Positions 90-34,919 of a stretch of 64,000 nucleotides of DNA are shown in pieces; within the stretch, counting starts at the first letter, position 1, and each line of letters begins with the position of its first letter. The notes under the pieces are model-generated. The model ran no database searches, was not told the origin of the DNA, and saw only the letters and a program-made list of their open reading frames with translations. Source of the DNA: Sminthopsis crassicaudata (lineage: Eukaryota); the NCBI RefSeq assembly GCF_048593235.1, contig NC_133618.1, positions 534,474,465 to 534,538,464 on the forward strand, given 5' to 3'. The position numbers were made by a program, and so were the translations under genes.

Positions 90-299
90 ATTCTGAATGA
101 GGGCAAGGAGGCACCAGGAGCAGAAAAAGTATGAAATACCTCATATAAATGGTGTTCCTTAAAGAGAGATAGGAATTCTAGGAGTCAGTAGTAAAAAAGG
201 AAGGCGTTCATTACAAGGATCTTTAAGCATTGAGATGAGACATATAAAATATCATGGTTAAAGAATAGTAAGTAGGTTGAATTGGTTACAGGATAGAAA

Positions 300-520
300 G
301 CACGGAGTTAAGAGTAACATGTAATAAGCCTGGAAGGATAGGCTGGAGCCTAATAATTAGGAGCTTTTAATGCCAACAGAGGAGTTAGCATTTTATCATA
401 GAAGCCTTTGCTAACTGCCATGTTTGTGTGAATTTGGGCAAATCACTTAACCTCTGGAGCCACTAGAACTTTTGAGCAAGGAACTCAAACAGCCAGATCT
501 ATTTGGAAAGGGGAGAGATT
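300..520 (-). mobile_element. Old L2 LINE fragment
   Basis: Degenerate L2-like purine-rich motifs (GGAAGGATAGGCTGGAGCC, GGAGCCACTAGAACTTTTTGAGCA). Confidence 0.45.
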
Positions 521-1336
521 TGAAGCACCTATACTAATCCTATTCATCCTCCAAGACCTAGCTCAAATCCCTCTTCTCTCTCCATCCAAATTCATTTTCT
601 GTTTTACTTATTTTAATTAAGGGTTGCCTTATGACATTTTCTGTACTTATTAAACTTTGCATGAATTTATGTCATAAATCCCCAAATAGATTATAAACTC
701 TATGATAGTAAGGAGTCTGGGACAAGGAATGAATCTATGATTTCATTGGGATAGGGAACATTCAGATATAGAAAACTCCCTCTACATTAATTTAAGTTAC
801 CATTTTCTCTGCAATGTATAGAATTGCTTACATAGTCAGAGACAAGAGTTTTGTTCCTTATACTTACTACAGTTTCTCTCCTTGGGTCTTGAATATAATG
901 AGCATTCAAAAAGACTGATTTATTTCATATTCAATTTCATATTTGATTTTTCTTATTTTTCTCCCCTAAAATCATTACTTCTTTGTGTCTAATTGAATTC
1001 TAATTGGTAGATTTTTTTTTTTAAATTAAAGTAATATCATCCCAGCCCAATCCATAGATTCTAATGCCAAGTTCTTGAAAAAAATGTAACACTACATATA
1101 TAAAAATTTCTCTTGGTCACTTTTCCTGAGAATTAGCATGTTATTTAGTATGTGATATTAAGTTATCTTTTTTTTTTTTTTTATGTAGGCCAATAAGATC
1201 CCTATTTTTAAAAAAAACCAAAATACTACATGGTGATTTACTTTTCCTGTTCTCTGTCAGCTCAATTTGTCAGGAGTCAGTTTTATTTTTTTGTGATATT
1301 TATTTGGTCCCTCTCTCTTTTGTATTTTTCTCATCT

Positions 1337-1355
1337 CCCCCCCCCCCCCCCCCCC
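1337..1355. repeat. poly(C)19 (poly-G on minus strand)
   Basis: 19 consecutive C. Confidence 0.9.
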
Positions 1356-1449
1356 GCCCATGCTGTATAAGTCTATTCTTTGGCCACAAGGTCCTCTAGG
1401 TGATGGACAGAGACAAGGAGAGGTAGGATCATCTTAATTGAGCCACTTT

Positions 1450-1545
1450 GGTAGCCATTCAAGAAAGAAGGAAGAAGAAAGGAAGTGAGAGAGGGAAGGA
1501 GGGAAGGGAGAGAGGGAGAGAGGAAGAGAGGAAAGGAAGGAAAGT
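1450..1545. repeat. GGAA/GAGG purine-rich low-complexity tract
   Basis: Near-pure A/G run. Confidence 0.85.
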
Positions 1546-1667
1546 AGGCTTTTTCCAAATAAAATAAATTTGGGGATTATCTATGGATTTTAAAAAATCC
1601 ATGCAGTCCTTCTATTCAATTAGCTAGTCTTCACTGAGAGTTTCTCTTAAGAAAATAATAAATAAAA

Positions 1668-1980
1668 AGAATTCAGAGACTTGTATAAATTAATGCATAG
1701 TGAAGCAAAAAGAACTGAGGAGTAATGTATATGATGTCATTACGATGAAAAACAATAGTGAAAGGCTTTGGAACTATGATCAATGCAGTTGTGAATGAGA
1801 CAACAGACAAATGCACAATAGGTGCAGAATAGCATGACCAGTATGTTTATTTGTTTTTGAGTATGTTATTCATTATAAGGAAAAGTTCAGTGTTGGGATA
1901 TTTGAGTAGGAGTTATTAGAAAATGACAGTGACATTTAAAAAGAAAAGAATATCAACAAAACATTTCAAAAGAAAAAAAA
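1668..1980 (+). mobile_element. Old L1 3' end (ORF2 tail / 3' UTR)
   Basis: GACTTGTATAAATTAATGCATAGTGAAGCAAAAAGAAC matches the L1 'DLHELMxSE' region; ends A-rich. Confidence 0.65.
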
Positions 1981-2009
1981 GAGAGAAGACAATGAGATCT
2001 AATGATAAT

Positions 2010-2171
2010 AATAACTAGTATTTAAGTAGTACTTTCCCCATAACAATACAATGAGAATGGTTCTGTATTAATATCATCCCTATTAAATGAATGAAGAAAC
2101 TGAGGCTTATAATGATTAAATAATTTGTCAATGTTCACACTATCAATGAATTTCAAAGCCAAGATTTGAAC
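2010..2171 (-). mobile_element. MIR CORE-SINE
   Basis: CORE motifs ATGAAGAAACTGAGGC and AAGATTTGAAC; cut by the N gap. Confidence 0.6.
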
Positions 2172-2395
2172 NNNNNNNNNNNNNNNNNNNNNNNNNNNNN
2201 NNNNNNNNNNNNNNNNNNNNNNNNNNNNNNNNNNNNNNNNNNNNNNNNNNNNNNNNNNNNNNNNNNNNNNNNNNNNNNNNNNNNNNNNNNNNNNNNNNNN
2301 NNNNNNNNNNNNNNNNNNNNNNNNNNNNNNNNNNNNNNNNNNNNNNNNNNNNNNNNNNNNNNNNNNNNNNNNNNNNNNNNNNNNNNNNNNNNNNN
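2172..2395. other. Assembly gap (224 N)
   Basis: N run. Confidence 1.
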
Positions 2396-3020
2396 TCTCT
2401 CCCATTCTCTCTCTCCCTTTCTCTGTTTCTGTTCTCTTTCTCTCTGTGTCTCTCTGTCTCTCTCTTTTTCTCTTTCAGTTTTTCTTTTTTATCTCTCATA
2501 TTATCATTCTTTCATTCTCTTCTTTTTTATGTTTGTCTCATTCTCCTTTTCTCGTTCTCTTCATATCTCTGATTTCTTCCTCACCTCTTCCTTCTCTCTC
2601 TCTTTCTTTATCTCTCTGTCTCTGTGTTTCTGTTCTTTCTCTGTTTTTTATCTCTCTGTGTTTCTGTTCTTTCTCTTTTTATCTCTTTCTCTCTCTCCTT
2701 TCTCTTTCTTTCTCTGTTTTACTCTTTTTATCTCTCACATTATCTTTCTCTCATTCTCTCTTTTTGATCTTTGTCTCATTATCCTTTTCTCATTCTCTCA
2801 TATCTCTGATTCTTTCTTTCCTCTTCCTTCTCTCTCTGTTTCTTTTTTTATCTCTGTCTCTGTGTTTCTGTTCTTTCTCTTTTTATCTCTTTCTCTCTGT
2901 TTCTCTCTGTTTTCTCTTTCTCACATCACCTTTCTCTCATTTTCTGATCTTTTTTTCCTTTCATTCTCTCTGTCTTTATCTCCTTCTCCCTCTGCCCCTC
3001 CACATCACCCTCTCCCCTCC
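2396..3020. repeat. Long CT-rich pyrimidine tract with internal duplications
   Basis: Almost pure T/C; the block TCTCTGTGTTTCTGTTCTTTCTC recurs at about 2620, 2655 and 2860. Confidence 0.9.
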
Positions 3021-3109
3021 CCACCCCGTGTGCATGCATGTCTGAGAGAGAAGGTCATTACCATGAGTCTTTTAGTAACTCTGTTACTGGGATTATTTAA
3101 CATTTATTA

Positions 3110-3260
3110 AGTGTCCACCATGCGTGAGGCCCTGCACGTCCCGCCATGTTCATTTCTGACTGGCATGTTATTAAAACAGAGACGTGACTGGGGCTGTAAA
3201 TCGCTCGGGATGACACGTCAGAATCCGGGTTGGAGGCACGAGCATCCCCTCGGCTCCTTG
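3110..3260. promoter_or_regulatory. CpG cluster, candidate enhancer
   Basis: 10 CpGs in 3123-3252 in a CpG-depleted background; bZIP-like TGACACGTCA at 3211-3220. Confidence 0.4.
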
Positions 3261-5139
3261 TACCAAGGAAGCTCCCCCCTTCCCCTCACAGCAGTGCTGA
3301 GGACAGAGGTTGCTATGTGGGTGGCAGGCCAGGAGGGCTGGGGGGCAGGGAGGGGAGCCAAGAGGGCCATTGGAGAGGGAGCATCTTCCTTGCCATGATT
3401 CAATTAAATGTTTTTAGAAAACGACACCGTGATCTGTTTCATACCAGTAAATATGTGATTTACATTTAATTCTGGGTAACCTTTCTGTGATCAGTGAGGT
3501 GTGAAGGAATCTAATAGCACAAAGCTACGGTTATGAGGAGGCCATTCATATTCATTAGGGCCCACACATTAACAATCCGCAGGGTGACAGCTTCCTAACA
3601 CATGCTTTATGACTACAGTTTATGGGAGGCCAACAAACAATGCAGACAGTGCCTGTGGGAGGGGGAAGGAAGCAGGTGTGTGCTGGGGAGAGCTGGGGAG
3701 AATGGGGAAAAATCCCCAGAGCAACAGGCAACGCTGGCCAGGCTGCAGAAAGCCCCACATTGCAGGGGGAGGGGGGGGATTGTTGATTGGAGGTGCTGGA
3801 GGTTGCTGGGTTGAAGAGACTATTGATTTAGGAAGGTTGCAAACTACAAAGTGTGTGGGGGGGTGTGGGGGTGTTAATCTCATCTGTATGTACTCTGCAT
3901 GTATTTTTGAAAAGCAAAGTTTTGTTGTGTGTTTTTTCCCAAGCCTAAATAGTACAGTGGGAAAAGTACCAACTTTGAAGTTCGGGGGCCAAAGTTCAAA
4001 TCCTATCTCTTGACATTTTACAATCTATGTGATCCCAAATAATTTCTCTTTGTACAAGAGGATGGGAGGCAGCATGGTGATGGTGCAATGGAAAAAATTC
4101 TTGATTTGGAGCTCACCCCAGTTGTTATCTGTGGCTTTCAGTTTCCCCACGGGGCATGGGTTGGGCTAGATGTTCTCTTCCACCATCCTAAATTCTTATA
4201 ATCTTAAGATTAGGAGATTTCTAAGGAAACTTGTAGCCTTAAATGTATTATCCTTTGAATTTCACAACTCTATGTTATTAATGGCTGAGATATACAGGGG
4301 AGGAACAACAAATGGGCATTTTTGTGTCAAAGTAGGTAAACTGAGAAAGCAGATGAGTAGTTATTGTGCCTTGTCTCCTGTAGTATGCTGGTAAATGTTC
4401 AACAATCAGCTCTCCAGGAAACACACTTTCAAGTTTTATCTGAATTATTAACGTTTCCTCTATCACTTTCTTGGCATTTTCTCAGTTTCTTTCTTAGAAT
4501 AATCAATAAAACAGTAATTTACAGCATTTTCCAGTTTCCAAAGTATAAATGTTCACACTGAAAATTTAACAATGTGCCCTTCCAGCACACCCTTGATTGT
4601 CATTTATTATTTGTTCAGAGCTCAGCCAAACTCTGTGCCACTTCTGGTCCAGTGCTGGGACTGGGCATAGGCAAGGTGGGCGGTCACCATAGTGTGACTA
4701 ACAGCAGGCTATAATGAGGAATGTATTCTAATTTGTTTTTATAAATGACATTTTCAATGCCAGAAAATTCTATTATCCAGGGAAGACGGGTATCTATTTT
4801 GTAATGAGTTGAGTCACCTTATCAGTGAAAATCCAAAGACTGGGTAGTTGGAGGGGCTAGTGACACAGAGAATACTATTTTCAAAACTTGCCTATGTATA
4901 TCAATGTCTTCTGAATCTGCTCTGTCCTGGATGGGGTTTTATAACTGAGAGAGAAATGTTCTATAAAGTCACTGTGCAGGCCCAAAAGTGGGTATGAGCT
5001 GTGGGAGTAGAGCAGCCCCCCGGAACTATAGCTATAGCCTTACTTGTCTCACTTTATAAGTTTGTGGGGATTTTACTCTGGCTTTGTCCCCAGGAGGGAA
5101 TTTTCAATGACTCCTGATTACTTCAAAATAAAAGTAAAA

Positions 5140-32059: not shown

Positions 32060-32670
32060 CAACTAAAAAATTGTCCTAGAATTGAATGGCATGAAGTTGG
32101 GAGGAAAAGCTAATAAATGATAAAATTCGGATCCAAAAACTCAACAGAGACTTGAATGATGGGTCAAATCTAATAAAATTAAATTTAAGAGGGATGAATT
32201 CCTGAATCTGGATTCAATAAATCAACCAGCACAAGATGAAAGAGAGATGACTACAAAGCGATTCATGTGAAAAGGCCCTGGAGTATTTTAGTAGACTGGA
32301 AGGTGAATATGAGTAAGCAATTTTACTTTATGGGCAAAAAAGCTGATAGAATCTTGTGCTCCATTAACAGAAGCACAAGTATATAAAAATGTAGTGTCAC
32401 CAGTCCCAAAAATTTTCTTGACCTACTTTCCTGATTACTAGAAGATTACTAGAAGAGAGAATAGATGCACAGGGTAAGTCATGGAAGAAAAATTGGATCA
32501 GGTACCAGTTGCAAGAATAAATTGAGTTCAAAATGAGAAAATGATGGTTCTACTGTATTCCGACTGGTCAAAGAAAACATGGAATACTGTGTTCAGCTCT
32601 GACTACACATATATAGACACTTACTGATTGGAGTACATCCAGAGGAAAGTGACCAGGATAGTGAAGGACT
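32060..32670 (+). mobile_element. L3/CR1 ORF2 3' fragment, interrupted at about 32380-32528
   Basis: CR1 motifs ATGTGAAAAGGCCCTGG...GTAGACTG...AATATGAGT; GAATACTGTGTTCAGCTCTG; GGAGTACATCCAGAGGAAAGTGACCAGGATAGTGAAGG. Confidence 0.8.
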
Positions 32671-33694
32671 CTGCCCTAAAAGGAAATGAATTAGGTTTAA
32701 AAGAGAGTTATGCTCAAAGTCTTCCAATATCAATATGTTTCTTTGTAGAAAAGGAACTTAATCTTTTGGAACAAACATAGTTTCACCAAGTAATAGTAAA
32801 GTAAAAAACTAGGAATACATCATTAGATTTGCTGATTGCAATTGAAAGTGATTTACCTCTAGATGGCACCTATGAAATAAATAACATTCAAAAGTAGAAT
32901 CAAAAGGCCTTTCATGAATGACAGCTACATGAACTTAATCAGCAATATATTGATTATGAGAAGTGTTGAACAAATGGCTGAGTCATGGAGATTTGTTTAT
33001 AGAAACAGAGGGAATTAGGGATAGAGTCATACTTACCAAAAATTACAAACAAATTGTCTTCAAGGAGCTTCAACTTACAAAACAATGTAGAGTATACAAG
33101 GGAATAGTAGAAATTACTCAACATGTTTTTTACAAGCCACCTACCAAATTTAGCCCCTACCAAAAACCTAGTAATGACCCGATGGCTAGAGTTAAAGATC
33201 ATCATTATTTTTCATAGACTAACAGATGACAAATTTTCACATTGCACATATAGATCTCTAGAAAATTCAACAAATAAGCTATACTTTAACTAGTCTATTA
33301 CCATAGAACTATTGCCTATAATTGCTCAGACATAGCATTGAACCATAAAAATTTAAGAACAATCTTAACAGATATTGTTAGAACAAATACTGAATCTCCA
33401 AGTTATGAAATTAAAAACTTTCAAAATATAGAGACTTAGAAAAAGAAATCAAAATAATGTGGGAGCAGGATAAATCACATACTATCCTCATCTTCCAGTC
33501 TTCTACAAGAATTGTTCTAAAGACACTTTCAGTAAACTGAAAATGAGATAACATTTATTCAATTGCAAGAAATTATTTTTATGCAACTATGCAATAGTCT
33601 AGAGAATAATAAATCTAAAAGACATGAGTATTTCTGCCTAACTTGATAAAACAAATTATTAGTTATTAATATAAATAATTATAATAACAATAAT
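32670..33694 (+). mobile_element. Dong/R4-clade non-LTR retrotransposon fossil (post-RT region, CCHC knuckle, RLE endonuclease, 3' tail); possibly Mam_R4-like
   Basis: Collinear across three frames: NQKAFH...IDYEK (32898-32963); NKWLSHGDLFIETEG-IRDRVILTKNYK (32969-33050); QCRVYKGIVEITQHV (33083-33127); LPNLAPTK; LENSTNKLYFN (33258); TIAYNCSDIAL...LTDI (33308-33375); KLSKYRDLEKEIKIMW (33415-33462); IQLQEII; then an AAT-rich tail. Confidence 0.88.
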
Positions 33695-33728
33695 GGGTGG
33701 CACAGTAACATTAAGAATAATGGACTTG

Positions 33729-34919
33729 CAAAGGATATGAACAGACAACAAAGGATATGAACAGATGATGAAATTGAAACTATTTCTACTCATATGAGTG
33801 TTCCAAATCACTATTGATCAGAGAAATGCAAATTAAGATAACTCTGAGATACCACTACACACCTGTCAGATTGGCTAAGATGACAGGAAAAAATAATGAT
33901 TAATGTTGGAGGGGATGCAGGAAAACCAGGACACTGATATATTGTTGGTGGAGTTGTGAATGGTTCCAACCATTCTGGAGAGAAATCTGGAACTATGCCC
34001 AAAAAGTTATCGAACTATGCATACCCTTTGATCCAGCAGTGTTACTACTGGACTTATATCCCAAAGAAATACAAAAGAAGGGAAAGGGACCTGTATGTAC
34101 CAAAATTTTTTTTGCTGCCAAAAGGCAGCCCTTTTTGTAGTGGCTAGAAACTGGAAAATGAATGGATGTCCATCAATTGAAGAATGGTTCGGTAAATTAT
34201 GGTATGAATGTTATGGAATATTATTGTTCTGTAAGAAATGACCAGCAGGATGAATACAGAGAGGCTTGAAGAAACTTACATGAACTGATGCTGAGTGAAC
34301 CGATCAGAACTAGGAGATCATTATGCACTTCAACGACAATACTTTATGAGGATGTATTCTAATGGAAGTGGATATCTTCAACATAGAGAGGATCTAGTTC
34401 AGCTCCAATTGATCAAAGATGGACAGAATCAGCTACACCCAGAGAAGGAACACTGGGAAATGAGTGTAAACTGTTTGCACTTTTGTTTTTCTTCCCAGGT
34501 TAGTTTTACCTTCTGAATCCAATTCTTCCTGTGCAACAAGAGAACTGTTCAGTTCTGCACAAATATATTGTATCTAGGATATACTATAACATATTTAACA
34601 TGTATAAGACTGCCTGCCATCTAGAGGAGGGGGTGGAGAGAGGGAAGGGAAAAGTTGGAACAGAAGTGAGTGCAAGGGATTATGTAGTAAAAAATTACCT
34701 AGAGTGGCAGCTAGGTGGGGCAGTGGATAGAGTACCAGCCCTGAATTCAGGAGGACCCAAGTTCAAATTTGATCTCAGACACTTAACACTTCCTAGCTGT
34801 GTGACCCTGGGCAAGTCACTTAACCCCAGCCTCAGGGGGGAAAAATTATCTAGACATATGTTCTGTCAATAAAAAGTTATAATTTAAAAAAATAAAGAAA
34901 GAGAAAAAGGGGGGAAAAA
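33729..34919 (+). mobile_element. Young 5'-truncated L1 (ORF2 C-terminus plus 3' UTR)
   Basis: KDMNR...SKSLLIREMQIKITLRYHYTPVRLAKM...CWRGC; A-rich tail; TSD AATAATGGACTTG (33716-33728) / AATGATGGACCTG (34920-34932). Confidence 0.95.
34704..34845 (+). mobile_element. WSINE1-type SINE inside the L1 3' UTR
   Basis: TSD AAAAATTACCTAGA (34690-34703) / AAAAATTATCTAGA (34841-34854). Confidence 0.92.

Follow-up and report, generated by a model that had tools for sequence, protein, structure and literature searches.

LINE biology in mammals is dominated by APE-type elements. The locus described here lies in a stretch of 64,000 nucleotides from Sminthopsis crassicaudata (the window) and raises the question of whether a non-LTR retrotransposon of another kind, one with a restriction-like endonuclease (RLE), has left a readable copy there, and from which clade such a copy came. 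The original prediction had read a Dong/R4-like RLE-type C terminus at 32670–33620. We found that this reading stands: the nearest proteins combine a reverse transcriptase (RT), a CCHC zinc knuckle, and an RLE, and their full-length relatives lie in (TAA)n and carry no N-terminal zinc fingers. As judged from sequence comparison, the locus is probably (at about 0.85) a dead, 5′-truncated non-LTR retrotransposon of the Dong/R4 clade (LINE/Dong-R4), located on the + strand at ~32784–33695. It retains the last ~285 codons of a single open reading frame (ORF), followed by a putative 3′ UTR remnant and what may be a (TAA)n tail in decay. The core of the predicted span was correct; both of its ends had to be moved. 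Homology starts at ~32784, with 32670–32783 made up of a separate upstream repeat and a single-copy spacer, and the element extends beyond 33620 up to the end of the TAA-like tail at 33695.

The locus matches the C terminus of Dong-like proteins

The window is AT-rich. At the fossil locus GC is ~0.30 and a single CpG is left in 781 bp; the longest open piece spans 85 codons (32960–33214, + strand). Using phmmer, we compared this piece with 1.84e9 representative proteins and obtained seven matches with E<1e-3, the best at 2.4e-6. Six of the seven have one C-terminal region in common; the seventh, P0007, was an unrelated repeat protein and was discarded as spurious. Three short matches showed a weak zf-RVT signal below the Pfam cutoff. 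The full-length match, P0005 from the weevil Sitophilus oryzae (1139 residues), carries RVT_1 at residues 487–749 according to Pfam, and the 85-codon piece matched its residues 934–991. When P0005 was searched against the window by tblastn, three colinear matches were found (residues 874–932 at 32784–32960, 935–991 at 32969–33127, and 1096–1133 at 33415–33528), and there was no credible match elsewhere in the window.

We further built an alignment and profile, A1, from the C-terminal ~310 residues of 30 relatives and searched it against all 3354 stop-free pieces on both strands of the window. Four of its seven matches were colinear pieces at the fossil locus, with E-values of 8.5e-11 (32960–33214), 1e-5 (33415–33537), 0.59 (33290–33436), and 9.3 (33111–33290). 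Aligned piece by piece to P0008, a complete weevil protein, six fossil pieces mapped monotonically to residues 879–1162, with 95 of 238 residues identical (40%); identity among the intact insect members in A1 ranges from 37 to 63%. Because of these E-values and the colinearity of the six pieces, we rejected a chance resemblance. At the level of sequence, these comparisons confirmed that the matched span corresponds to the last ~285 residues of insect proteins with an RT, a CCHC knuckle, and an RLE. The nearest proteins are of the RLE-type non-LTR kind. All motifs named in the original prediction were also recovered by three-frame translation, on the + strand and in the order given there. The features are as follows.

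32784–32959, + strand: linker between the RT/thumb and the zinc knuckle; aligns to P0008 879–935; stops at 32802, 32895, and 32919
32960–33130 (open to 33214), + strand: best-preserved piece, carrying the NKWL..ETEG..TKNY block and the beginning of the CCHC knuckle; found by phmmer and profile
33132–33293, + strand: second half of the knuckle through LEN..KLY, ending at the stop at 33291; P0008 1003–1055, 17/46 identical
33299–33411, + strand: RLE core, with N-C-S-D and the second acidic Asp; profile positions 197–230
33412–33540, + strand: RLE lysine block K-L-S-K-Y and the helix after it; profile E 1e-5, positions 238–276
33536–33626, + strand: extreme C terminus of the ORF, containing the predicted IQLQ; weak colinear alignment to P0008 1150–1162
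33627–33656, + strand: putative short 3′ UTR remnant, assigned from its position
33657–33695, + strand: degenerate (TAA)n-like tail or target microsatellite; TAA periodicity 26/36

Reading through the fossil requires five frame changes (near 32960, 33130, 33296, 33412, and 33538) and crosses five in-frame stops (32802, 32895, 32919, 33291, and 33412). The linker piece shares 21 of 59 residues with P0005 in the tblastn alignment and 21 of 57 with P0008 in the piecewise alignment. The piece that follows (32960–33130) is identical to P0008 at 28 of 53 positions, although four codons present in the family are missing after ETEG. The second half of the knuckle matched profile positions 170–192 weakly, and the lysine-block piece showed 39% identity to P0005 1096–1133 by tblastn. 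The C-terminal piece corresponds to the family end QKAVIL..IVRKFL seen in A1, and we infer that the ORF terminates at ~33626.

Pfam scans of all fossil reading pieces and of both flanks gave no meaningful match, and the 85-residue piece yielded no candidate as query in a word-indexed protein search. Feature searches of the ESM Atlas stayed at noise level (UvrD-like fragments and, for the upstream repeat, a faint ALKBH8_N lead that was unconfirmed by Pfam). The other word-indexed protein searches retrieved only arthropod or unlabelled Dong-like proteins and no vertebrate comparator.

All named relatives that we retrieved are arthropods, with no vertebrate R4 protein among them, and this pattern could be taken to mean that the lineage entered marsupials by horizontal transfer rather than by vertical descent within vertebrates. 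The closest proteins are indeed all from insects or unlabelled assemblies, the 40% identity to the weevil protein is as high as that between some insect members, and one reference list cites a case in which an R4-clade element passed horizontally from one mosquito genus to another. We nevertheless consider such a transfer, which the original prediction had raised and for which our analysis gave no support, highly unlikely. Missing vertebrate matches are to be expected, as vertebrate transposable elements are masked ahead of gene calling and some of the searches were word-limited, and the blocks that matched are the most conserved of the domain. Moreover, the R4 clade is documented in fish, in a lizard, and among human relics (PMC5753468, PMC7998251), which makes vertical presence the simpler reading.

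Zinc knuckle and nuclease residues remain legible

The original prediction had described a readable zinc knuckle and PD-D-K nuclease. We found legible remnants of both, and they line up with the columns that are invariant in A1. The invariant knuckle of the family reads C-R-x-C...E..H....C...R-H. The fossil has Cys at 33086–88 followed by Arg and Val, then Tyr (33095–97) in place of the second Cys, Glu at 33110–12, and His at 33122–24. The fourth Cys is lost after the frameshift, while LAPT and the Arg of the R-H pair of the family are retained. These residues agree with the predicted change of the second Cys to Tyr and loss of the last Cys.

In the nuclease, columns N203, P205, and D206 of A1 are invariant, and R204 and D221 nearly so. 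The N-R-P-D of the family reads N-C-S-D in the fossil (33320–33331), so the first catalytic Asp (33329–31) is retained. A CGC>TGC change by CpG decay is a plausible source of the Arg-to-Cys replacement. The second acidic residue is the Asp at 33371–73, within TDIV where the family has IDIA. The lysine block K-x-x-K-Y is intact at 33415–33429 (Lys 33415–17, Lys 33424–26, and Tyr 33427–29); the stop at 33412 stands where the family has Glu, and another at 33538 closes the piece.

The A1 profile also matched the solved R2 proteins 9nl3, 9dou, and 9nl2 at ~1e-12, both in the knuckle block and in the KPD...D...K..KY block. As both blocks match, the domain is an R2-type knuckle plus restriction-like endonuclease.

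Full-length relatives carry the hallmarks of Dong/R4

The clade is defined by phylogeny of the RT domain, which this copy lacks; the Dong/R4 call thus rests on nearest-neighbor similarity together with the target and architecture of the neighbors, and is to be read as probable. We examined assembled contigs of five full-length relatives and found (TAA)n at the 3′ end of the element in four of them and at both ends in three (TAA runs flank L002, L003, and L004 on either side, L005 has one at the 3′ end, and L006 ends within the element). Their 3′ UTRs measure 74–105 bp from the stop codon to the (TAA)n tail. None of the 30 relatives has a C2H2-like motif within the first 500 residues, all 30 have one C-terminal CCHC, and a Pfam scan of P0005 detected only RVT_1. 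This agrees with published Dong/R4 elements (PMC7998251, PMC3774820), which have an RT and a REL endonuclease but no N-terminal zinc fingers and which target (TAA)n in most insects, molluscs, and cnidarians; the species cited include Sitophilus and Spodoptera (PMC7998251). Dong itself is a TAA-flanked member of the R4 lineage, and an HDV-like self-cleaving ribozyme has been reported at its 5′ ends (PMC3774820). In L002 (1–130), L003 (170–445), and L004 (1–550), a GC-rich stretch directly follows (TAA)n, at the place where the Dong ribozyme was reported; an Rfam scan of L002 for an HDV-like ribozyme gave no match.

A fossil from a different RLE-type clade (Hero, NeSL, or R2) would also present a CCHC knuckle and a PD-D-K nuclease, as these are common to all RLE clades. 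Our Dong-like profile accordingly detects R2 proteins as well, at 1e-12, and relics of Hero are present in amniote genomes (PMC9004415). Still, we regard an origin outside Dong/R4 as unlikely. Apart from the one spurious repeat protein, every match among the 1.84e9 proteins belonged to the TAA-flanked Dong-like family. The best piece, which finds Dong-like proteins at 2.4e-6, hit no chain at all in the PDB by phmmer, and hence none of R2, at E up to 10. The 3′ end of the fossil is a TAA-like tract, and mammals are reported to be without R2 (PMC5753468).

The copy is truncated at its 5′ end and decayed

The profile of the full-length family found no RT part upstream of the fossil or anywhere else in the window. 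Since the RT domain is absent, the copy is 5′ truncated. At the other end, 33657–33695 contains the best TAA-periodic 36-mer on the + strand of the window (26/36); only three loci on this strand reach 24/36, and one of these is a poly-A run. The tract is short and degenerate, and TRF called no array on it, which indicates that it is heavily decayed. At the 5′ junction we saw no TAA repeat.

Five stops per ~285 codons suggest ~0.14 substitutions per site, and seven indels in ~840 bp suggest ~0.1; both are rough figures for the age of the fossil, derived without a family consensus. At the protein level the decay is moderate, since the fossil is no less similar to the weevil protein than some intact members are to one another. 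In combination with paralogs of at least 80% likeness (see below), these figures hint at a copy younger than typical ancient mammalian relics, although they cannot date it. The suggestion that the copy is unusually preserved was not borne out, given its 5′ truncation, five stops, and five frameshifts.

The same lesions bear on whether the fragment could have been exapted and maintained by selection in a regulatory or coding role. In human, Dong-R4 relics contribute far more than their share of exapted elements (797 exapted versus 550 genomic; PMC3428314), and an 85-codon stretch of the fossil remains open. Against this, the stops and frameshifts are spread over ~285 codons, residues of the catalytic motif have been replaced, and the stretch appeared in no RNA run. 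No orthologous spanning contig was seen in a second organism (organism B, see below), where the unique flanking bins are likewise empty, although such a hole proves nothing. We find exaptation barely credible. The fossil is a dead insertion without present function, one among many copies in the genome.

The fossil belongs to a multicopy family and lies between other probable LINE fossils

Assembled contigs of four public runs were aligned to the window at a likeness of at least 80%. In organism A, the likely source, in which the single-copy depth is 51, the depth over the fossil ranged from 120 to 3200 in most bins, that is, 2–60 times the single-copy level, and contigs of organism B also covered fossil bins. 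Because of this extra depth in two organisms, the fossil belongs to a multicopy family in both. The bin 33377–33457 is A-rich, and its extra depth may be partly low-complexity noise; bin 32729–32809 is single copy in organism A and empty in organism B. Within the window itself, no second copy emerged when the locus was compared with the remainder by blastn and tblastx, or in the profile searches.

The flanks of the fossil are probably other LINE fossils and not rDNA. Directly upstream, 32081–32728 on the + strand is a separate repeat with high depth in both organisms and a single-copy island at 32405–32485. Its pieces ILVDWKVNMSKQ.., LLYSDW.., and LEYIQRKVTRIVKD resemble what follows the RT motifs in CR1/L2-type elements, and the repeat may come from the C-terminal part of such an RT; neither Pfam nor the Dong-like profile found anything in it. 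We considered whether this repeat might be the missing RT part and rejected it, as the full-length family profile finds nothing there and the single-copy bin 32729–32809 separates the two repeats. On the downstream side, the + strand from 33701 to 34400 and beyond (EMQIKITLRYHYTPVRLAKMT..) is presumably a 3′ fragment of L1 ORF2. From 33701 onward, right after the TAA-like tail, all four runs reach depths in the millions. The A/T-rich tail was probably the insertion site of the L1 fragment, which would then be younger than the Dong/R4 copy.

Relation to known elements and proposed history

The nearest sequence relatives (40% over 238 aligned residues) are Dong of Bombyx mori and the Dong-like elements of insects, molluscs, and cnidarians. 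They share with the fossil the C-terminal organization of the NKWL..ETEG..QDQ..T.NY block, the C-x2-C..H-x4-C knuckle, and NRPD...D...K..KY. They also have a short 3′ UTR and a (TAA)n 3′ end, to which the putative UTR remnant and the TAA-like tract of the fossil may correspond. In contrast to Dong, the fossil is borne by a vertebrate, lacks the RT and the N terminus, is broken by stops and frameshifts, and has only a degenerate TAA remnant, with none at the 5′ junction. R4 of Ascaris and other nematodes and Rex6 of teleost fish belong to the same clade according to the literature, in which an RLE follows the RT and an APE is absent; R4 proper, likened here by description, targets 28S rDNA and not (TAA)n. 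R2 (9nl3, 9nl2, and 9dou) has a homologous knuckle and RLE, and the chemistry of target-primed reverse transcription is presumably shared. R2 differs in its N-terminal zinc fingers, its Myb domain, and its insertion into 28S rDNA, and the fossil, whose best piece does not detect R2, stands much nearer to the insect family.

Among mammals, the R4 clade is known from human LINE relics, with X4_LINE in Repbase (PMC5753468), and Mam_R4 and Hero are given as the sole RLE-type relics in human (PMC9004415). Mam_R4 (Dfam) and X4_LINE (Repbase) fall in the same class as the fossil, LINE/Dong-R4, and likewise reside in a mammalian genome; the comparison here is at the level of class. RepeatMasker annotation lists 550 Dong-R4 elements in human (PMC3428314) and 12,719 copies, amounting to 4.9 Mb, in the marsupial Antechinus (PMC9631953). 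The caution in the original prediction that the family may not be new was justified, as the class is already catalogued and numbers thousands of copies in Antechinus. The fossil is one unremarkable copy of a repeat class that was already known and annotated.

The following history would account for the locus. In an active family, the ORF protein would have bound its own RNA, and its RLE would have opened a nick in a (TAA)n microsatellite. From this nick the RT would have primed cDNA synthesis by target-primed reverse transcription. An early end of synthesis would have left out the RT-coding 5′ part. Neutral decay after insertion could then have introduced the five in-frame stops and five frameshifts and removed almost every CpG, and the L1 would later have landed beside the A/T-rich tail.

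The ~20-fold gap in copy number between the marsupial and human, together with paralogs of the fossil at 80% likeness or more, suggests later activity in marsupials but does not prove it. The estimate of ~0.1–0.15 substitutions per site hints in the same direction. That the copy belongs to a Dong/R4 lineage peculiar to marsupials, one that retained (TAA)n targeting and amplified well after the marsupial-eutherian split, is a tentative proposal, which we would sooner doubt than assume. If it were true, marsupials would stand alone among mammals in having had substantial activity of an RLE LINE after the split. The single locus matters little, and the modest interest lies in the family: a microsatellite-targeting RLE LINE that remained active in the marsupial lineage would give a useful natural comparison. 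We came across very little published description of the marsupial Dong-R4 family, with Mam_R4 named (PMC9004415) and Dong-R4 tabulated (PMC9631953). The family merits study as a whole, with regard to its age, its target preference, and its phylogeny.

Annotation of Dong-like proteins in public databases

Several of the retrieved relatives carry database labels at odds with their sequence. P0079, a Dong-like LINE protein of 1076 residues that is 48% identical to the weevil C terminus, is labelled as an RNA-directed DNA polymerase of Streptomyces narbonensis and lies on a 4-kb contig; it is most likely eukaryotic contamination in a bacterial assembly. P0173, a Dong-like knuckle/RLE fragment of 264 residues from the weevil Pagiophloeus tsushimanus, is named "GST" in nr, which looks like a misannotation. 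Last, the 6.8-kb Sitophilus oryzae "gene" span of P0008 (L001) contains a (TAA)6 run at 4524–4541, which suggests that in this gene model portions of two neighboring Dong-like insertions have been fused across a microsatellite.
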